A DNA stretch of 63,495 nucleotides, filler included, from Reticulomyxa filosa (GCA_000512085.1; 17 parts of 17 records of this genome joined end to end with filler, not necessarily neighbours in it), one strand, 5' to 3'. Positions 25,583 to 38,011 are shown, counted from the first letter of the whole stretch. Program-made: numbers and translations. The notes: a model not told the origin generated them from the letters alone.

Positions 25583-25700
25583 NNNNNNNNNNNNNNNNNN
25601 NNNNNNNNNNNNNNNNNNNNNNNNNNTTAATTAATTAANNNNNNNNNNNNNNNNNNNNNNNNNNNNNNNNNNNNNNNNNNNNTTTTTATTCATTTGAAAC

Positions 25701-27310
25701 TTACTTTTTTGCCAGCTTCAAATCAATCGACTGCAACATTCGGTCCACCACCAAAGAAAACGAGCTGAAAAAGTCTTTGTAAAGGTTCCAAATCCGAAGG
25801 TGCCACAGGCAAATGTTTCCATTAAATTGGTCCAATAGGTATTTGGTCTGTGAGCTGTTCCACAAAAAATGCAAAAGGGCGTCTGCGTCCATATTAATGA
25901 TGAGGTTTTCGTCAATAAACAGGACGTAGTTTTTCCAATCGATAAGATTTTCGAAAGGCAAAGTCCAACCATTGGCAACGATGACAGGGATACAGCCCGC
26001 ACTCATGACGTCCATCAAACGATACGACCAGACCATGTCGCCTGCAATGACCAAGCAAAAATGGGAATGAAGTACCAGGTCGCTGTAATTGAAAAAATTG
26101 CCGGCGGTCTTGTCCCAATTTCCGACCGATATATATATTCCTTTCTCCAATGCACTTGAGTTGGCACCATTCAGTGCCTCGTTTATTTTTCTGCGTAAAT
26201 TCTGGACCCGATGGGAAAATGTATTCATGTACTGAGAATAGTACAATCTTTGTCGTCCTTGAAACACTACCGTATAGTGGTACCATTCTTTTAGCATGGT
26301 CAGATTATTCGGTGCAAGCATCTATCTTTTTTTTTCCCCCCCCCCCCCCTTTCATTGTGTGCACACACCGTTCTTAAGAAAAGGAAGGAGGGATTGATAA
26401 ATGATTTTTTTTTTTAATTAAAAAAAAAAAGCCACTTTTTTAGGACTTTGCAAACCTGGGTCTTGCGAAAGCAGATATTGCTTTGTTTTGCAATTTCAGA
26501 AAAGTCATTTTCGGCAACGGTAGGCAGACTAATGTCCAAATGAGGACGAAAGGCTTCACTGTAAGCGTTGTAAGTGATTTGGGCAATGGGCACGCCCGAA
26601 ATGACTCTCGTTTCTTTCCACGTAAAGCTTGCCATTGGAAAGTAAAAAATTTGTTGTTGGGTCGGGTCAAATTGGGATCTATTTCGCACAAGGTACTGAA
26701 ACGATTTTTGCATAATGAAATGGAAAATCTGCTTTTCTGTCAGATACGTAGGCCTTCGATAAGCGCTCAATGCTCCAATGTCGCGATAACACTTTCCTAA
26801 TGATTTCGACTTTGCCATTGTTTGAACCATTCCAAACGAAATAAATACTACGCGCGCATCCCTCATATCCGCTACTCGACATGGATGCACATACAACCAT
26901 TTGTACATCTCATAGATTTCATAGAAACCGCAGTTGCGTGGATCAAGGATTGATAGTCGTTGACCTTTTGCAAAATTATATCTTTGGGAAATGTTGTAAA
27001 TGTAAAAACGCGCATTTGCAAGTTGGCAAACTTGCTTTTGTGGATGGAGTCCTGTGAAATACGTTAATTGTGTTGGAAGACGTAAAAAATTGCTTTGGCC
27101 TCGCTCTCTACTTTTGTTCACTACTCCACTAGCGGTCATCTTTTTCACACTCTCTTTTATCTCACTGTAAACGTGATTATACGTAGGTGGTGTTTCTAGC
27201 GAACTCATCTTGCACAATGGGCACGGACGTCCAGTTGCATAGAAAAATAACAACAAACATGTCACGCACTGTAGTAGAAATACTATTACACATATCGTTT
27301 TTCTTTTCAT
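25701..27310 (-). CDS. Exostosin-family (GT47) type II membrane glycosyltransferase
   Basis: N-terminal anchor MKRKTICVIVFLLQCVTCLLLFFY, FYIYN, then HFCLVIAGD..WSYRLMDVMSAGCIPVIV..WTLPFENLIDW; intron ~26335-26457. Confidence 0.88.
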
Positions 27311-27587
27311 TCCCACTCCAGACAGATGGTCATACAAAAATAGTCTTTCTCTTTGAAATTCCAAAAAAAAAATTCCTTGTACTGTTAGTTTCCTTGTTAT
27401 TATTATTTTTTTAACATCAACAAAAGGAAAAAAGCTGTTCGTTGGACCATCATATAACATATATAACTAATTTAAAGTTTAGAAAGTAAAAAACTCGTGG
27501 CTGTGTTTTTTCAAGCTTTGCTCTTAAAAGGGGCCCATTCAAGGGGGGAAAAAACAGCTTTCTTATGAGGAAAAGAAAAAAAGAAAA

Positions 27588-29044
27588 ATGAGTGAGCTCA
27601 AGAAATCTCACTCCGAGTCGACACAAAAATCAAGACTAACTATGGAAGACGTGCCACTGACTCAGATATCACGAAAAAAAAAGATGACAAGTATTGCGAA
27701 AAAATAGTCGACGAAAAACTGCGATACAAAAAAGAAAAGAAAGCAGTGCCAGCAACAGAAACAATGAACAAAATAGTACAATTCCTGATTCATAAATGTC
27801 ATAGCGAGCGTTTCCAAAAAAACACGATATTTGAGCGTACCTACGGAGTGATGTCAGGAGACGGGATCCAAAGTCGATTAGCAGTGGATCGACATTTTGA
27901 CGCATCGATGGTAGTAATTTTCCAAATGGATGAGAGCGAATCTTGGAAAGTGGGGCACGAAACAGTGGAGAAGATGAAGAGCTGGATCCGCGACACAATT
28001 ACGAAAGAATTGAAGTCGTGGTTGGGCAGTGCATTCACAACTGAATGGCCGAATAAAGAAAAGCAAAGAGACAGCCGCATGTCGTTAACGCAAAAGGAGG
28101 AAGAGAAAAAAATGACACCAACACCATTAAGAGGTTCCAGTACAAATGACGAATCGAGAACATATGATAATATAATGACAGTAATGCAAATAAAATTTGA
28201 TGAAGGGACAATAGAAATCAAAATAGCGTTTTCGTACGACAGGCATATATACTTTGGGTTTCATTACAAGGGCCTACAACAACATGTGTATGAATACTCG
28301 TCGGAAGAGTTGGGAGCCCTGGCCAAAGATTTGCTCGAAGTCATGGCCTCTTATAGAGAAGCCATCGAAAAAGCTGATTCCATTCAGGAAGAGGCATTTT
28401 TAAGACAAAACATGATGACTATGTTCTCAATCGTTCGCGCGCATCGTTTGAATCCGTCGCAAGTCCATCAAAACGTTCGTCGCGCTATTATTCTACTCAA
28501 GTCTTGGAAGTACAAATTACTCGCTGCTAAACAGATCAAACAATTCATTCACAATTATACCATTGACACGCTTTGCATTGCTGCTTACTATTTCCTTATT
28601 CGCAAGAAAAAATATACATCGGTCGAAGTCTTGGACATTGTTCATTTTGTTTTTGATATCATTATTTGGACTTCCGAAAAAGTTATCAGAAATGATCTTG
28701 CCTGCGTCCTCTATTGTTCCTTTGATGATGGCGCTCATCTGTTGGTTAATTCAACCGATATTGAAAAATATCTTACCCATTGCAAAGAACCTCCTCGTGT
28801 TCTTGTCATTGATTTCATTGTTCCTGGTTGGTCGTTTTTTTCTATTCTTTTTTTTTCCCCATCAAAACACTTTTTTTTTTTTTGGAGCCACTATACAAAT
28901 AAATTAGAGTCACTCGAAAAAGATCAATCCTGCTGGGAGGAGATGAGAAGTCGTGTTAGAGAGGCTCAAGAAATAATGCGTAGTGAAGGACCTACTGCAT
29001 GGATTGACACTTTGATTCCGTTAAGTCATCAACAGCCATCATGA
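27588..29044 (+). CDS. OAS/cGAS/DZF-superfamily nucleotidyltransferase-fold protein with degenerate catalytic motifs
   Basis: Motifs in OAS order: VMSGDG...FDASMVVIF (vs GGS...SDADLVVF), IEIKIAFSYD (vs VEFDVLPAFD), RRAIILLKSWKY (vs KSLIRLVKHWY), HNYTIDTLCIAAY (vs PQYALELLTVYAW), PRVLVIDFIVP (vs RPVILDPADP), WEEM (vs WRQL). The start at 27588 needs +1 A in the A9 run at 27674-27682; probable in-frame intron ~28830-28887. Confidence 0.65.
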
Positions 29045-29973
29045 CTCCTTCATTTAAGTTTCTTTGTGTTGTTTGAATAGTCACTGATGAGAAAGTCCGG
29101 ATTATAAGTAATTTGTGCCATCTCGTTGTGCCAGTTCCTGCCCAATGGAAGATCTAGAACCTCAGAGTTACATCTGGATAAATTTTTTTTATTTATTGTC
29201 ACACCTTTTTGGTTTTGAAAAATCGATTTCAGCAAAAGGATAGACTAAAAAAGCAAATCCTACCAACTTGTATTTTCGTGTTTGTATATTACACACCAAA
29301 GCCAGATTTTTGGACCACTAGTAATAACAAAAAAAATGTTCTAAATAAATAAAGATTGCATGTTTTTTCGAAGTTTATAATTCAGGAGTGATAGCTAGCA
29401 TATTCAATTTTCAATTAAAACTTTAAGCACTAAATTAATAAGAGTTGTTTTTTGTTTACTTGGAAATAACGTATAACAGTTTGAATATGCAGTGAAGCAA
29501 AAATTGTAGTGGCTACGTTTGAAAAAATTGGAGGATTTGAAGTACTTAAATTTTTTTGGAGTCTTTGATTTTGCAGAGTACGACCTCCAAATTATTGGTA
29601 TAATTCATATAGTGGCTACGATTTGATTTCACCCAATTGTTACAATTGGCCAAAGTGGCTTAATATTGCAAACAGTTTGCATAATTGTAAGCGTTTTGAG
29701 TGCTAAGTTGTATATGTTGACAATTAGTGGTTATCAACAAGGCAAAATTTGCATAAAATGCAAGATGGAGATATTGTGCTCATTGAGAAGAAATGCTTTA
29801 TCATCCAAAACAACTTGTGTCAGACTTTGCAACGCTTTTTAAAAACAAAATACAGGCCCAAAAAAGCACATTTTTCTCAAAAAGTGCATTACACCGGGAA
29901 AAGTCCATCGAATTTATACAAATCAAACGCAACAAAGTTCCGTGTATGCGTTTGCGAAAACAAAACAAAAATT

Positions 29974-32900
29974 TTAATCCCAATCAAAAGATTTGACTGT
30001 CAAAATGTTCAACAAATCAGCGTGTGATTGTATCCACTCCGAATATTTGGTATTGAAATCATTTTTGGCAGATTCATGCAAATACGCGTTAAAAGCAATT
30101 AATACCAAATATCTTTCCAAAAAATATCCAGAAATTTCTTTCCAATAGGCTCTCCTTTCCATCGTTTCACGGTCATACCTTACAATAGCAATAATTATTT
30201 TTTGAGTTGTGATTGGCAAAAAGTAAAAAAAATAAATTAAAAAACAAATGAAAACATACCATAATTTGGTAGAATAAATGCAAACACGCATATTTTGTAA
30301 ATGTTGATTTCTGTTAATGATATCATCAACTTCACTCTTAATTTTTTCCCCATCTAATTTATAGTTGTTGGTCAACGTTTCCACCAGTTTTTTAACTAAC
30401 GTGTAGTTTCCATTTCTCATATCAATTTCGCTCAGCTTATGTTCACTTTGCTTTTCATCTTCCGGTTTTGTGTTGGTGGAAATATGTTGCAAGTACTGTG
30501 CATTGTCTTTTGCTTCTTCACTGGATACCAAAGGAGTGGCATTTGGCCATATTGTTGTATACTTACTCGTCATATTTTCCACAAATTCGCCTTCCATTTG
30601 TATTCGTTTGGTTTGTGTCGCCCGTTATGTGCAATGTGAGAAAACATAAACGCCAAGAGAAGGGGGGGGGGGAAAGATAATAAGTACATAGTTTTTGTTT
30701 TTGTTTTTGCCAAGAGGACAAACATACCGCATTGTTTCTTAATTAAGCAACTGCAAATCATTCCCACAGTGGTTCGACCTTTTCCCATTTGGCAATTAAA
30801 AACAATGGCGGTTTTGTTGTCAGTATAGTTTCTAACACGATCCACTAAGGTGTCAATATCTTCAGCGTCGGGTGCTCTTTCATCATTAACCGGCAGACGT
30901 TCCAGTTTTACGGGGAAAGAATTCGTGTTTTGTTCGGCATACATTTCCACCAGTGTTTTGACAGTGTCAGGACCCCTGACGGGTTCGGTCAATACCATGT
31001 CTTTGCGATCTGCAGGCAGCAAGGCATACGTGTCCTTGTGGTACTCAAACAAGCCATGATTTTTCTCATTCTTTATTCGAACGACATTGGCCAGTTCATT
31101 TTGCAATGTGTTCACGTCGTCGATACTCAAGGTTCCGCCTAATCGAATGTTGTGTGTCAAATGGTCTTTATCCCTTGGCGCGTACGACATACCGTTTACA
31201 TACAGCACGGGCTCCGATCTCATGTTCACCCATAGGCATTGTTCTAATCCAAACCTTTTTTTTTTTTTTTGTAGAGTCCCCAAACATACAAAAAAAAGTC
31301 ATATCAGAGAAAGAAAAGAAGGAAAGAGGAGATAAAAAAAATATATATGTGTACATACTTTTGAACTCAGAGAATATTTTGGCTAAGGCAAATACAGTCG
31401 GCTGGCCACATCCGAAAATCCAAAAGCCCTCGGTTTGTCGGAGGTTGGGGATGCCTTCGATCTTGGGCTCCAAGCGGTAAATGTTTTCGAAATGATCCAC
31501 TTTGACCACGCCTTGCTTCATTATCACCAGCGCCTCTTCGTACTCTTTCGAATGGACTTGCTTCTCTTCTTCCGTCATTCCTGCCTTTTCCAATATGTCC
31601 TCGCCAGAAACTGGCCTTGCCAATTGAATGTATTTCGACCAACTGTCGTATACGTCAGCCTCTGCCACAGATAAACAAAACAAAAAAAGGTACAAACAAA
31701 ATTACAATAATACATTACATATAAAAATAAGAAGGGGGGGGGGGAGAGAGGATCAAACCTGAAAACACATTTGCGGTATGTAGCAATCCTAACACCAAAT
31801 CTCCTCCTTCTTTTACTTCCCCTTTCAAATCTTGTCCTCTCATTTTCAGTTTCGATCGCTCATAGGCCATCACTCGACGTGCGTGTGTCACCCAAATGAT
31901 GTGGAACGTGATGAGCCATCCTAAGCCCACCCAAAATGTTATGCGATCGATCCGGTGCATCTTGTGTTGCGACGATGGAGTGCCCGTGTCACACCAGCTC
32001 AAGAAGCATGCTATGATCGATTTAAGTTATTCATATGTGTATACGTTTACATGTGTATACATATATATATAAAATGTGCACGCATGATATTCGATTGTCT
32101 ACAAAATGATGTTTGCCCCATTTTTGAAAACACGAAACTTTGAATGGCCACAAAGAACATGAAAAAGAACACGCTGCGGACATAAATGTCAAGGTGAGTT
32201 AGGTATGGTACCTATAAAAAAAAAGGGGGGGGGGGAAGAAAAAAGTTCAAAACAAGGCAAGAAAAAAAAACAAAAAAAAAACTTGAACTTACATCCGGCA
32301 TTTTGCTATCCACGACAAATTGAAAAGCGACCATGGTCAAGACCAATGTGAAAATGAAACCTTTGTGATTGCACACGAGTGTTGTGAATTCCAAAAACTG
32401 CACAAAACAAGAAAAAAAAGACAAAGTATGTGACACAAGCATACTTAATCGGTTGGGGAGATCGTCAATGGGACTCATTGCAAATGCACACAAAGTGGAC
32501 AGCGAAAACAAGGTGCAGTAAATGAGGACGTGATCAAAGTAGTATCTCCATTTTCTGGCTACTTTCAATCGACAAAAAAAGTTGCTATAGGAGATATTGG
32601 CTGCGGACTTTGTTGGGTCACTTCGAGAAAATTCGATTATCTGTTTTGTTTTTTTTTTTTTTTTTTTTTTTGAGCTCATAGTAAGTAAAAAAAAAAAAAA
32701 AGACCTCTTTTTTTATTTTTATTTTTTTCTTCTCCCCTCTCCCTTTGTAAGACCCAAACTGGGGTGTGCAATTGCCAATTATCCAATGACATGTTTTCAG
32801 TCACGATTCGAACCACTGAATTATTCCTACGTACCGACGGCGTCAACACTGCTTTGTCCACCTATCTTACCCACCAAAAAAAAAAGGCATACAAAAATTC

Positions 32901-34098
32901 GCGTGTGTTGGCTTTGATCCTTCAATCTGCAAAATTAAAAGCTAATATACATATACATATATGCATGCATGTATACTCAACAGAAAACTCGCTCCAAATC
33001 GGAATTGTCAAATCTTGGCAATCAAAAGGAAAATTCTTTAACTCTGATACATTTCCAAGACATGTCAACAAAACAAAAGTAATGAAACAAGACACAGATT
33101 GTCGATTACAATAAAACACGTATATCAATCACGGTGGTCGCATTGTAACATACCTAAAGGCTCCGCAAATGTTCCATGCAGCATGAACTATATTTTCCAA
33201 ACAAATGTTAAACAGCTTTGCTACCACACAACAACAACAACAACAACAAGGTTGACAAAACTTTCCATTCGGCCATGCGTAGACCGGTAGGTGATGTATT
33301 GGCACTTACAATACGCCACTGAGAGTTGGGAGAATCGGAATGGGCTTGAATTAAGTTCAACATATATATGCATATACATATATATTTATATATACATATA
33401 TATACATGTATATGTATATATGCTGTTTTTTTTTCTCTCAATGATTTGCAAAGATTTCGAAACTCTCCAAAAGTGTTGGAAATGATAGCTTTGGCTTCCA
33501 TAGCACTTGTTTCACTACATCGTCATATTCACCATCACCGTCTTCCTCGTCTTCTTCTGTCGCATTGTCCTTTCGTCGACCCAATTTGTAATTGGCTTCG
33601 TCGATGTTCCATTCCAACAATATCATCAGATTCTTTATTACGATATTTTTATTTGTGTTTTGGTATTTGTTATTCATACAGGTGTTTTTTGTTGTTTGTT
33701 TATTTGGTTTTTGTTTTCAATTACCACCAACAACATCGCATGTAAAACTATACCGCTTTGAATGTTTGCGCAGCTGTATTTTGTATTTTGTATTTTTATT
33801 TTTATTTTTTTTCTGTTTTAATGTTGCTAACTTCCTATTTTTTCTTTATTACAATACAGCCAAGGCAGATCAACTCACCAGTGTCCACTTCTCCCACTCT
33901 TCGGATAAATAGTGATAGTCCGATATTCACTGGACCTTCAGGGTAATTGTTCGACGTTACCACCTGCTGACTTACAATGCGGCTTAACGGTGGAAGTTTG
34001 TCAAATTTGAAATCATTTTTGGCTGTCAATTGGTATAGGGATTGAGAAAATTTGAAATTATCTGCATTTCGCAACGGCAAAATTTCTTGGACGGCCAT
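29974..34098 (-). CDS. Cys-less pentameric ligand-gated ion channel subunit fused to a C-terminal paladin-like (PTP-like, Cx5R) phosphatase
   Basis: Manually spliced exons: PVNIGLSLFIRRVGEVDT|AAQTFKA|NLMILLEW...WKPKLSFP|...|FMLHGTFAEPL|ELKNFPFDCQDL (Pro-loop)|...W|...LKVARKWRYY-M1-NRL|S-M2-MPD|VPYLTHLDIY-M3|...IDRITFW-M4...VFS|EADVYD...IPNLRQ..GCGQPT, WVNMRSEP, RLPVNDERAP, FNCQMGKGRTT, LERYLVLIAFNAYL*. Junction intron 31662-31758 is GT-AG and phase 1 at both ends. Confidence 0.8.
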
Positions 34099-34738
34099 TA
34101 TTGAACCAAAAAAAGGAAAAGCAAAAAAGTTCCCCAACAAATTATCAACTTTGATTCTAAGCTTTTTGAATTTGAAAAAAATATGAAGGAATTACTACAA
34201 TCGCACAAAAGACTTCCAATCTTTTGATGTCTAAAAAAAAATGAAAACTTTTTTTGCACAAATTGCCAAGCTGAAAATGCTTGCACCAAACTAACAATGA
34301 GCACAGTTAATTTCTGAAATTACGTCAACATCCAGTTTGGGATCTATAGACAAAAAGAGAATATAAATAAAATAAAAAAAATAAAAAATAAAAAATTGCT
34401 GTGTGAGGCGAACGGGATTGCTTTTGTAGTGAAGAATTCTGATAATTGGTCACTAAGAGAACCCCAAACAATAAAAAAATATCACCACAATGTTGCGCAA
34501 ACAACTTTTCCAAGTGAAGAAAACAAAAGCAAGGAACAATAAAAGTGTATTTGTGTTATTTTTTTAAAACTGCAAATCAAAAGAGGCAAAACAAATGGAT
34601 TTATTTTTAAACAGAATCCGCACATCCTCAAAACAATAATAAAAAAAAAGGTATGATGTTGATGCGTTATTGCAATTGTCAACTATCAATCGTTGGCTGG
34701 TTTATTTTTTTTTTCGATTGTTTGTTTGTGCATAGACA

Positions 34739-35890
34739 TTACTTTGTATCTTTTTCTTCATTTTCTGGATTGGTTGGCGCCTTACTGTTATCATCAGAAG
34801 TGGTTGCCCCAGTACTTTCGGTTACTTTCTTGGACTTTTTTTTTTTATTTTGATGTGCATTTTGTAGCTAAGGGAAAGAGACGAAAGAGGAGGGGATTAT
34901 TATAATAATCGTATTGATCTAACAAAAAAAAAGCACACAACATACACAAAAATGTCACCAATTGTATTTCTTCACTTACCTCTTCTTTAAAGTGATCTTG
35001 AATTCTTCTAATAATTTTAGATTGCAACGCACCAATGGGTAATTCCCACTCGCTCAGCAAATCAGATACTGCAATTGTCCCTTTCGAAACTGATTGCTTG
35101 AGTTTATCCATTGCAAATTTATTTTTTTTCAATACGTTAAATATTTGTTCTTCATCTTCAATGCCCACCAACGAAAACTATTTCCAACATTTTACAATCA
35201 CTAAATATATATATAATTATTATAAAAAAAAAGAAAAAATTTTAAAAAACTCCTTTTGTTTATTTGTGAAGTTAGTTTTTTTTTCCCTCCTTCTTCCTCC
35301 CCTTTTCGTTTTTCTTTCTTAGGTGTTCAGTTGCATGTTTTGTATGTATACGTACATTTTTTTCCTCTAATTTTCATACAAAACATGTAACCTCTAGTTC
35401 CTTACTAAAGTGAAAAAAAGTTTTGTTTTTATAGGACACATGGATCAATTGATGAAAAAGCAAGCTGAAAAAACAAATTCGTTCCAAAAAAAAAAAAAAT
35501 TTGCATGAAAGTAGCGAAAAAAAAAAGTACGAAACCCATTGCTCCATTACAACATTGACCACTTTGAAGTGCAATCTCGATGTCATTGGCAACCCGTAAT
35601 GCTCCATTATTTGGCTCACTTCAAATTTGGATCCCTTTTGTACTGCACTGATAATCAAACGTGTCATTTTTCGTGATTGCTCGATTGCGTCCAGTATTTC
35701 TTCTTCTGTTTCGCATTCTCCTAAATTTATCTGTAATTCACACGCACCCGTGTTTACCATTCATATCCCAAAATCAAACTCAGTGTTTTTTTTTGTCCGA
35801 GCAAATTCGTATACTCAACTCTGCGATGGTGATGATGATGGTCCATGTTCACTTTTCACCTTCCTCTTTTTCGTCAAAGGATTATCTGGA
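34739..35890 (-). CDS. Hypothetical multi-exon protein with short helical (possibly SAM-like) repeats
   Basis: Two similar exon-like blocks (EEEILDAIEQSRK...MEHYGLP and EEQIFNVLKKNK...LSEWELP) separated by AT-rich intron-like DNA; boundaries uncertain. Confidence 0.45.
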
Positions 35891-38011
35891 AGGAATCAAT
35901 CACAATACAAAGATTTTACAACTCTTGACACAAAATCTCACAATATCTAGGAAACCTCACAATGTCAAGAAATATGACACTAGTTTTTTGTCCTATTTTC
36001 CCTTTTACTGGAAAACACGTTTTAAAACTTGTTTCACAAATGGAAACAAATTTTTAATTACCTTTGCTATGCATATGCTTCTGTAGAACTAACTTCTCTT
36101 CTTTGATGGAGATGTGAGATCAATCACAAACAACAAATCATTGAACTTATTCTCAATAAATTATCCTATCGTGTACTATTAAAATATAATACTTTCATTG
36201 TTAATTTCTATCAATTCAGATCTCAATTATATCTGAAAAAAAATTTTTTGCAGTGTTTTTACCATTTTGTTGGTTTTTCTTGTGCATTGATTAAAGTTTT
36301 AATTCTTCTTGGCATTGACTCAACTAGATCATTTTGACATAGTTGAATGTCATTTTTTCCAAATATTTTTTCAAATTTTTCACAAAGTTTTTGTTTGTTG
36401 TTAATTTTTTTGCCTTTGTATAATTTTACTTTAATTATCCACCAAATGTTCTCAATTGGATTAGGTCTGGTGAATTATGAGTAAAATTTATAAGTTATAC
36501 AGAGGTTGCAAAGAAAACTGAACGCCTAAAACAATATCTTATGATGNNNNNNNNNNNNNNNNNNNNNNNNNNNNNNNNNNNNNNNNNNNNTTAATTAATT
36601 AANNNNNNNNNNNNNNNNNNNNNNNNNNNNNNNNNNNNNNNNNNNNTTATCCACAGACGGTAAAAAACGAGTACGTGAACAACCCTGGTATCAACGTTCG
36701 AAAGCATTTCAAAGAGGGCAATTCACACAATGACAAATTTGAGATTTTATATGACATTGAAACTATAATAAAAAACCATCATTTGTGGGCTCTCATTTGT
36801 GAAGGTATTGTGCATGAATATATATTGTGGCTCTATCTTTTGAATGAAAAAAGATTATATGCGATTTGAACACTTTTGTGATATGTCGTTTGTCGGAAAA
36901 GATATCTTCTCCCAATGGAATTGCGTTTTTTAATTTGAAACAAAACGGAAAAACGAACGCAGTGAATGAATACACAAACAATTGATATTTGACCAATTTT
37001 TTGTGCCTAGCTTGAACACGATTAAGTACTTCTTTCATGAGGAAGACATTTCCATTAAAGAAGGACTCTAATATCGGGAAAACAAAACAACACAAATGAG
37101 AGCTTGTGTTCAAAATCCACTCAGTGGTCTTTGGCAACTTTAATCACATGCTAAAGCGCTCACTTCTAAAGTCGTAGGGAACAATTTCTCTTGATTTTTT
37201 GTTAGTTCTAGTACAAAAACTAAGTTCGTTTTCTTCGTATGAAAGAACTCTTGCAATAAAAAAAAGCTTAATTCTTTGCTTTGGCAATTACCAAAAAAAC
37301 TTGCGTAAATGTTCAAATAAATTGTGCACGCCAATCATGTAAATTTTTGTTTTAGCCTAAACTTTTGCATTACATATCATTAATACTAAGTTCACCAGTT
37401 GGGATCATGTTTTTACATCAATACTGTACAAAGCATATTGACAACATAAAATTATCAATTTAAAGTCAGTATCTAATATTTTTGTTAATTTTGTGTTTAT
37501 TTGGAAAAACGTTAAGAACTAACAGTTACAGCAAAAGGGTCAACATTTTTCTTCCCATTTGAAGCATTGCTTTCAATAAGAAAGTTAAGGAAAATGGTAA
37601 CAGATTCCAATCCAAACGACGATAACATCACAAAAAAATTGCTGATTTTGGATGACACCATTAAAAGTTGATTGAGTGAACATTTTTTTAACTTAAAGTG
37701 TGACCATTTTTATTATTATTGTATTTTTAACAGAAGAACCCAACTGTGCGTCGAGTTTTTATACTCATAAAAATAACTGGTTTCATCGTGTTCGGGCTGA
37801 GGTTTTAACTCCCAATGACTGTATTTTCAATGAAACGGATGGTAACTTATACTTTCGATATGACAAAGCAGCCGAGACAAGCAAGATGATCGTGATCATT
37901 ATCATTGCAGTNNNNNNNNNNNNNNNNNNNNNNNNNNNNNNNNNNNNNNNNNNNNTTAATTAATTAANNNNNNNNNNNNNNNNNNNNNNNNNNNNNNNNN
38001 NNNNNNNNNNN

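Follow-up and report, generated by a model that had tools for sequence, protein, structure and literature searches.

A candidate fusion of a pentameric ligand-gated channel subunit with a paladin-like phosphatase in the foraminifer Reticulomyxa filosa

Introduction

[quoted passage not shown] The pLGICs are among the best-studied receptor families, and the question is raised by a locus of Reticulomyxa filosa (Foraminifera, Rhizaria) on the minus strand, at positions 34098-29974 of the window, by which we mean the whole analysed stretch of 63,495 nucleotides (nt), filler included, taken from the genome assembly GCA_000512085.1. The part of the window that holds the locus, 25683-36546, is contig ASPP01020724.1 (10,864 bp). 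A preliminary description of this DNA had proposed that one gene joins a pLGIC subunit by splicing to a paladin-like phosphatase of the Cx5R type, and an ancient paralog of the gene supports this proposal. In our judgement, the locus is probably a real and intact 15-exon fusion gene with an 877-residue product, with the origin and the mechanism outlined below.

Results

The junction between the channel and phosphatase exons

The gene was read from an ATG at 34098 to a stop codon at 29976-29974 as 15 exons, which comprise 2634 nt and 877 codons in consistent phases. The start codon, the donor at 31758 and the 97-nt phase 1 intron at 31758-31662 are where the preliminary description had placed them. 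As it also stated, no stop codon intervenes between the fourth transmembrane helix (M4) and this donor: the frame is open to the end of the exon at 31759, which is followed by the GT at 31758. Removal of the intron, the eleventh of the gene, joins ..VFS|E|ADVYD.. in phase 1 on both sides, whereas its retention would lead to an in-frame TAA at 31717-31715, the unspliced stop that had been given as 31715.

The paralog was found by a protein search with the phosphatase exon, which returned two R. filosa proteins, ETO13244.1 and ETO31707.1. The latter (RFI_05413) is the GenBank model of a second locus of the same genome, L001 on contig ASPP01004759.1, which is colinear with the fusion gene from start codon to stop. 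Twelve of the 15 exons are equal in length in the two copies and have AG/GT flanks at matching positions. The other three differ: relative to the window copy, the paralog has 9 nt less in exon 1 and 12 nt more in exon 13 as well as in exon 14. Each of the 14 introns has the same position and phase in both copies, the junction intron included. An exon-wise codon alignment of both copies was concatenated and used for counting substitutions, charges and hydropathy. Synonymous sites are saturated between the copies (pS ~0.75). By contrast, pN amounts to 0.10 for the N-terminal domain and for the transmembrane domain, 0.13 for the phosphatase, 0.20 for the tail behind M4 and 0.30 for the linker. 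The N-terminal and transmembrane domains are thus the most strongly constrained parts, with 84-85% amino acid identity. The two copies are evidently old, and any sequence that can still be aligned between them should be under constraint, because the synonymous sites are saturated. Neither copy is decaying, since both are equally similar to the outgroup phosphatases.

At the junction itself, the paralog has an 87-nt intron (GTTTTG..TCAG) in the same phase, which also contains an in-frame stop if retained. The donor G|GTTT, the acceptor CAG| and phase 1 are kept in both copies, and the similarity between the copies drops exactly at the GT and resumes exactly after the AG; within the intron, the identity (0.52 with gaps, z 2.1) is comparable to that of the other 13 introns. 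The basic, 43-residue post-M4 tail shows no indels and 72% amino acid identity between the paralogs, and its conservation reaches the codon that precedes the donor (..DLVLGL-x-HTANVF-x), third positions having changed synonymously. On the other side, the 28 codons of the linker from the acceptor to the first Met (31578) also lack indels, and their identities at the three codon positions are 0.61/0.82/0.21 (Fisher p 2e-5). Only this frame of the linker is open in both copies, as the other two contain stops in the paralog. No in-frame ATG was found upstream of the linker in either copy, a stop being reached first when the unspliced sequence is read back, and neither locus, when searched, showed a hidden first exon of the myristoylation or lipidation type for the phosphatase.

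Because the linker has a coding pattern and no in-frame ATG, we take its codons to be translated, and only an upstream exon can lead into them. The evident candidate is the M4 exon, which lies at a distance of 97 nt and ends in the phase required. The donor sequence is also typical of this gene, as all 14 introns are of the GT..AG type (74-137 nt) and six of them have GTT-type donors (GTTTCG, GTTTTG, GTTGAG, GTTTGG, GTTTCG and GTTTGA), most of which are GTT in the paralog too. These comparisons strongly suggest a genuine fused open reading frame, to which we assign a high probability.

Exon model of the fusion gene

The exons and the junction intron are as follows.

Exon 1, 33879-34098, minus strand: N-terminal helix region and beta1 (..GLSLFIRRVGEVDT); the paralog begins at the homologous ATG (L001 202).
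Exon 2, 33754-33773, minus strand: 20-nt microexon, (A)AQTFKA; the same 20-nt exon with AG/GT flanks in the paralog.
Exon 3, 33464-33632, minus strand: beta2, an acidic insertion and WKP (33500-33492); 169 nt in both copies.
Exon 4, 33262-33344, minus strand: ..HSDSPNSQWRI VSANTSPTGLRMAEWK; passes an internal GTAAGT (33309-33304) to a GTTTTG donor.
Exon 5, 33154-33187, minus strand: FMLHGTFAEPL; supported by the paralog.
Exon 6, 32982-33043, minus strand: Pro-loop, FPFDCQ (33032-33015); spliced directly from ..EFS to VDKAV.. of exon 7.
Exon 7, 32760-32861, minus strand: beta8-beta9 (VDKAVLTPS..DNWQLHTP).
Exon 8, 32445-32640, minus strand: loop C region, beta10, pre-M1 RLKVARKWRYY (32571-32539), M1 (32538-32476) and the start of M2.
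Exon 9, 32293-32360, minus strand: M2 pore helix; the join ..NRL|S|FIFTLVLTM.. is confirmed by the paralog.
Exon 10, 32139-32211, minus strand: M2-M3 loop (PYLTHLD) and most of M3.
Exon 11, 31759-32010, minus strand: end of M3, short M3-M4 loop, M4 (31951-31889) and post-M4 tail (31888-31760), ending ..DLVLGLLHTANVFS.
Intron 11 (domain junction), 31662-31758, minus strand: 97 nt, GTTTGA..GCAG, phase 1.
Exon 12, 31359-31661, minus strand: 28-codon linker (31759/31661-31579), Met 31578 and the start of the paladin-like unit (VKVDHFENIYRL, 31506-31471).
Exon 13, 30728-31243, minus strand: PTPlike_phytase core with NMRSEP, the NDERAP acid loop (30887-30870) and the CQMGKGRT P-loop (30794-30771).
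Exon 14, 30260-30590, minus strand: variable insert and helical C-terminal part of the paladin-like unit.
Exon 15, 29974-30178, minus strand: end of the paladin-like unit (..KSFDWD) and the stop at 29976-29974.

For exon 2, every difference between the copies is synonymous, and its inclusion brings back the canonical beta1-beta2 spacing VD-x3-Q-x4-N-x6-W. Exon 8 is nearly identical in the paralog, which also confirms the M3 join between exons 10 and 11 (..VAIQ|T|CFLSW). For exon 4, the paralog is without the GTAAGT and keeps the 16 downstream codons and a GTTTGG donor.

Several other splice choices were rejected on the evidence of the paralog: the GTAAGT donor inside exon 4 (33309-33304), an extra 34-nt exon of 11 residues between exons 6 and 7 (LKDQSQHTRIF, ~32937-32904), a TGG|GTCTTA donor for exon 7, and later donors for exon 10. 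At the junction, a GAA|GTAAAA donor with a cagag| acceptor is possible in the window copy, and was rejected because it is not conserved. The exon 4 GTAAGT, a strong donor whose use would leave out 16 conserved codons, and the 34-nt exon are in-frame options absent from the paralog, and may represent isoforms specific to the window copy. The two copies do not share the acceptor of exon 13 (31244-31275; L001 3060-3085). In the paralog it is tgttag|AA, placed 12 nt further upstream, which adds four codons (LGLE), and in the window copy a TGG-to-TAG change both puts a stop into this upstream reading and creates the gattag| acceptor.

The channel half

The channel half reads as a Cys-less pLGIC subunit with an N-terminal domain of ~260 residues, M1-M4 and a very short M3-M4 loop, and hydropathy shows only the four expected helices. 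All the motifs named in the preliminary description are present, namely QTF, WKP, GTF, FPFDCQ, the pre-M1 R..YY, M1-M4 and PYLTHLD. Its claim of a full Cys-less subunit is supported by profile and structure matches for the transmembrane domain, and for the N-terminal domain by motifs and spacing; hidden Markov model (HMM) searches with single exons of that domain gave no match.

For the transmembrane domain, the GenBank model ETO13244.1, which retains intron 8, matched Neur_chan_memb (PF02932) with 28.8 bits against a cutoff of 28.1. With the same model, phmmer against the Protein Data Bank (PDB) returned GABA-A and GLIC chains over M2-M4 (E 2e-5 to 5e-3), and the ESM Atlas places it structurally next to Neur_chan clusters (TM 0.62-0.63). 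These matches indicate that the transmembrane domain belongs to the pLGIC family. M2 has P-N-R at -2' to 0', at the intracellular mouth, Thr at 6' and Leu at 9'. The anion-type P-x-R signature of the pore mouth has been discussed by Jaiteh et al. (PMC4795631), and the resemblance of this M2 mouth to it might weakly hint at an anion-type pore.

For the N-terminal domain, direct reading gives VD-x3-Q-x4-N-x6-W, WKP, G-x22-FPFD and ~78 residues from FPFD to the pre-M1 Arg. The FPFDCQ Pro-loop with its central Pro (33032-33015) is identical in the paralog. The disulfide pair of the Cys-loop is absent, with Glu and Leu at the two positions, and the whole domain has only two Cys; polar and hydrophobic residues at these positions have been described for Cys-less receptors (PMC4795631). 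A GenBank fragment of the paralog (P0153), scanned for this domain, had no Pfam match. The motifs, their spacing and the strong constraint (pN 0.10) suggest that this domain is a pLGIC ligand-binding domain.

The phosphatase half and its relatives

The phosphatase half constitutes a single complete paladin-like unit, with VKVDHFENIYRL, NMRSEP, NDERAP and CQMGKGRT followed by C-terminal helices, and is separated from the post-M4 tail by a linker of ~50 residues overall. The core exon matches the Pfam family PTPlike_phytase (PF14566) with 119.7 bits (cutoff 27), E 1.6e-34, over profile positions 1-158 of 158. The catalytic loop C-Q-M-G-K-G-R at 30794-30774 is intact, as had been noted, and both the C-x5-R-T P-loop (CQMGKGRT) and the acid-loop Asp (NDERAP) are kept in the paralog DNA and in the homologues.

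R. filosa also has a standalone copy of the phosphatase, RFI_05794. Among the closest relatives outside this genome, nearly all complete ones begin with MGN(K/S)xS.. or with MGxxxS followed by lysines; we read these starts as an N-myristoylation site with a polybasic membrane anchor, which would place these enzymes on the cytosolic face. One of them, at 299-1877 of a TARA metagenome scaffold (L003), starts MGNSKSKK.., has 55% core identity and contains an intron after ..FK, as between exons 12 and 13; a marine foraminifer, or a close relation of one, is its probable source. More distant relatives from other eukaryotes and metagenomes (P0058, P0059, P0076, P0100, P0109, P0140 and P0123) are single-unit proteins with varied N-terminal modules, which are MORN repeats in several, SIR2_2 (P0140) or a Dpy-30 motif (P0123); a hydrophobic anchor also occurs among the more distant relatives. 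The paladin-like family therefore seems prone to swapping of N-terminal modules.

Paladin has been reported to be a PI(4,5)P2 phosphatase (PMC7857541). By analogy, the best guess for the substrate of the R. filosa enzyme would be a local phosphoinositide or inositol phosphate.

Public gene models and prior record

The preliminary description was not aware of a report of this architecture. Our literature search found no paper combining Reticulomyxa with ligand-gated channels and none joining pLGICs with a phosphatase or enzymatic domain, but the join is already public as the unnamed hypothetical protein RFI_24133. This GenBank model (ETO13244.1, UniProt X6MH70; 689 residues; 32679-29974) fuses the phosphatase to M1-M4 at the junction described above. 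GenBank splits the window gene into a 241-residue model (34625-33438) and RFI_24133, with exons 4-7 unannotated; in RFI_24133, introns 8 and 14 are left in and 26 residues of exon 13 are missing. Three models divide the paralog between them (L001 202-913, 2387-3060 and 3136-4340), and of these RFI_05413 is mis-spliced so that its catalytic loop is lost, although the DNA encodes an intact CQMGKGR.

The pLGIC survey by Jaiteh, Taly and Henin (2016, PMC4795631) covers Stramenopiles, Chlorophyta, Opisthokonta and Alveolata, and neither 'Rhizaria' nor 'phosphatase' occurs in its text. The only pLGIC with an extra domain met in the literature search is the bacterial DeCLIC (PMC9897478), in which that domain is N-terminal.

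Discussion

Membrane topology and proposed mechanism

To our knowledge, every known pLGIC has its N-terminal domain and its C-terminus on one side of the membrane, normally outside. Because the C-terminus of a pLGIC lies on the side of the ligand-binding domain, the phosphatase would sit beside that domain; in voltage-sensing phosphatases (VSPs), by contrast, the enzyme is at the cytoplasmic mouth. In known pLGIC structures, the post-M4 segment is peripheral and packs against the Cys/Pro-loop.

Neither copy has a signal peptide: both begin at the homologous ATG with a polar N-terminus. Upstream of this ATG there is no conservation, and both copies have an in-frame stop without an ATG; an unseen exon may nevertheless precede it. 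By segment, the Lys and Arg residues number 5 before M1, 1 between M1 and M2, 1 between M2 and M3, 3 between M3 and M4 and 7 after M4, so that the sum of 13 for the pre-M1, M2-M3 and post-M4 segments against 4 for M1-M2 and M3-M4 favours an N-in/C-in orientation. The lack of a signal peptide together with these charge counts favours a cytosolic location of both soluble domains, and so does the enzyme itself, which depends on a reduced Cys and has relatives that seem to be attached to the cytosolic leaflet. If the fusion protein is made, the balance thus leans slightly towards both soluble domains facing the cytosol. The full form of this arrangement is an inside-facing pLGIC, with the ligand-binding domain and the phosphatase in the cytosol, the helices N-in/C-in, gating by a cytosolic ligand and five lipid-phosphatase domains on the inner leaflet. 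The absence of the Cys-loop disulfide also counts in its support, and we put it forward tentatively, as a possibility with less than an even chance.

As for the mechanism, the subunits would assemble as pentamers and thereby bring up to five phosphatase domains to the membrane rim on the side of the ligand-binding domain, where they would probably dephosphorylate phosphoinositides or inositol phosphates beside the pore. Because it is peripheral and next to the Pro-loop in known pLGICs, the post-M4 tail is the likely coupling element, which may pass movements of the ligand domain or of gating to the enzyme, or the state of the enzyme to gating. The protein could accordingly work as a ligand-gated phosphatase or as a phosphatase-regulated channel. 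As for the origin, the ancestral foraminiferal enzyme may have been a standalone phosphatase with an N-terminal membrane anchor of the myristoylation type. In the Reticulomyxa lineage, a channel subunit would have replaced this anchor, with the old start Met surviving as an internal Met, and the fusion would then have been duplicated, which is the simplest history. Similarity to the standalone relatives starts near this internal Met, 31578.

Alternative explanations

Several findings weigh against the fusion as proposed. The architecture was seen in R. filosa only. The preliminary description had suggested looking for it in other organisms, and Neur_chan and PTPlike_phytase were found together in no further protein among 45 domain-checked matches (20 further single-domain proteins from the top 150, scanned with Pfam, and 25 precomputed rows). 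The closest phosphatase relatives outside R. filosa, from Ammonia sp., Nonionella stella and environmental contigs, stand alone and measure 350-510 residues. Among the protein matches, none derived from a transcript had the fusion architecture, and a look-up of RNA sequencing runs for the locus returned none. Two metagenome scans with channel exons 8 and 11 gave no match; a word search with the transmembrane domain of ETO13244.1 returned only itself, and a tblastn search of plasmids with this domain, for a bacterial pLGIC, gave none. Both copies have kept the Met of position 31578, approximately where the standalone relatives begin, and it may allow a separate phosphatase product from an internal start. 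With canonical topology, moreover, a Cys-dependent enzyme whose relatives are apparently cytosolic would be expected to sit outside the cell. One could hence suppose two adjacent, separately expressed genes, in which the pLGIC ends at the TAA at 31717-31715, the phosphatase begins at Met 31578, and the apparent join is a coincidence of gene prediction, carried over by a duplication of the whole block. The conserved Met, the standalone state of all phosphatase relatives outside R. filosa and the wrong membrane side of the enzyme would all fit two such genes. However, the 28 codons upstream of Met 31578 have a coding signature and a single shared open frame without an in-frame ATG, the 43-residue tail is conserved up to the donor where similarity then collapses, and the GT, the AG and the phase have been kept despite saturated synonymous sites. 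The two genes would also be separated by only ~140 nt, as compared with ~750 nt to the nearest upstream same-strand open reading frame, and the lipidation-type N-terminus of the standalone relatives is absent from both loci. We therefore regard the existence of two separate genes as quite improbable. Far more improbable still, in our view bordering on negligible, is a decaying pseudogene or an assembly chimera without a product. The assembly is a draft of short contigs, the GenBank models are fragmented at both loci, and an A16 homopolymer (~31270-31255) adjoins the exon 13 acceptor, where it could hide an assembly or length error. Nevertheless, the frame is intact over 15 exons on each of two independent contigs, in every part pN is much lower than pS, and both copies are equally near to the outgroups and have an intact catalytic loop; a chimera, besides, would not arise twice with saturated synonymous divergence.

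The fusion could also be real with a pLGIC part that serves as no more than a pentamerising membrane anchor, one that took the place of the myristoyl anchor on a phosphatase that is constitutively active. The relatives of the enzyme swap N-terminal modules, from myristoylation-type starts, MORN repeats and a hydrophobic anchor to SIR2_2 and Dpy-30, and the lack of a signal peptide and of the usual conserved Pro in M1 are in line with such a role. The N-terminal domain is, in addition, too divergent for exon-by-exon HMM detection: its single exons (7-73 residues; exons 3 and 8 for phmmer against PDB) gave no Pfam or PDB match, which also counts against the preferred reading. On the other hand, the N-terminal and transmembrane domains are the most constrained parts of the protein (pN 0.10), beyond the needs of a simple anchor, and Leu 9', Thr 6', P-N-R, the FPFD Pro-loop, the pre-M1 Arg and PYLTHLD are all kept. 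We thus consider a mere anchor unlikely.

Comparison with known systems

The candidate fusion protein shares with the Cys-less Pro-loop pLGICs of protists and prokaryotes (GLIC, ELIC) the FPFD Pro-loop, the polar and hydrophobic residues at the Cys-loop positions, the pre-M1 Arg and four transmembrane helices, of which M3 and M4 are linked by a very short loop and M2 has Leu 9' and Thr 6'. It differs from them in its 450-residue C-terminal extension with an enzyme, in the lack of a signal peptide in both R. filosa copies and in the strongly basic pre-M1 and post-M4 flanks. With paladin (PALD1) and the single-unit proteins of protists, it has in common PF14566, CQMGKGRT, the NDERAP-type acid loop, VKVDHFENIYRL and the C-terminal helical parts; core identity to the foraminiferal and environmental homologues is 49-52%, and the intron after ..FK is common to it and the TARA contig. 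Metazoan paladin has tandem units, whereas the R. filosa protein has one. The protist proteins are standalone with small N-terminal modules, in the place of which the R. filosa protein has a whole channel subunit.

The concept of a four-helix membrane sensor followed by a Cys-based lipid phosphatase on one polypeptide is shared with Ci-VSP. However, Ci-VSP has a voltage-sensor domain with both ends cytosolic and a PTEN-like enzyme with a C2 domain, whereas the R. filosa fusion has a pLGIC subunit with a canonically extracellular C-terminus and another Cx5R family, and is expected to be a pentamer. The Pfam results comprised Neur_chan_memb and PTPlike_phytase, with no voltage-sensor or PTEN family, and the fusion resembles the VSPs in logic without being a member. 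The comparison with VSPs drawn in the preliminary description is thus at odds with canonical pLGIC topology, and works only if both protein ends are cytosolic. TRPM6/7, with a kinase, and TRPM2, with NUDT9-H, likewise combine an ion-channel subunit with a C-terminal enzyme-type domain, but they belong to the TRP channels, are tetramers and have their C-termini, with the kinase or Nudix domains, in the cytosol.

If made, the fusion protein would join pentameric ligand sensing to lipid or inositol-phosphate signalling in one polypeptide that has been kept in two copies over the long term. We found no prior description of a pLGIC with a C-terminal enzyme. The protein would also provide a natural test of how movement of the M4 C-terminus is passed to another domain. 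It may also help with the substrate and regulation of paladin-like enzymes, which are poorly understood. If both soluble domains are cytosolic, the assumption that the ligand-binding domains of pLGICs are always extracellular or periplasmic would fail, and an inside-facing receptor, if true, would be the ligand-gated counterpart of the VSPs. In addition, the channel half adds Rhizaria to the groups with pLGIC genes.

Genomic surroundings

The contig has a GC content of 30-43%, and its genes are broken by many short GT..AG introns. Downstream of the fusion gene, the convergent neighbour on the plus strand at 27746-29044 is an uninterrupted open reading frame of 432 residues without a Pfam family (the GenBank gene has 460 residues). 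The next neighbour, on the minus strand at 25701-27460, encodes a glycosyltransferase of the exostosin GT47 type (PF03016, E 1.5e-25 for 25704-26321), and a 348-residue open reading frame just upstream of it had no Pfam match. On the upstream side, the minus-strand neighbour at 34845-35760 consists of pieces of 108 and 128 residues, of which the first matches zf-CRD below threshold (E 1e-3). Some ~750 nt lie between the end of this neighbour and the fusion-gene ATG, a guide to intergenic spacing on this contig. Many introns of the fusion gene (33878-30179) contain long C or T runs and microsatellites of the TATG or CAA type. GTT donors and repeat-rich introns may be a splice-site feature of R. 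filosa that gene predictors handle badly.

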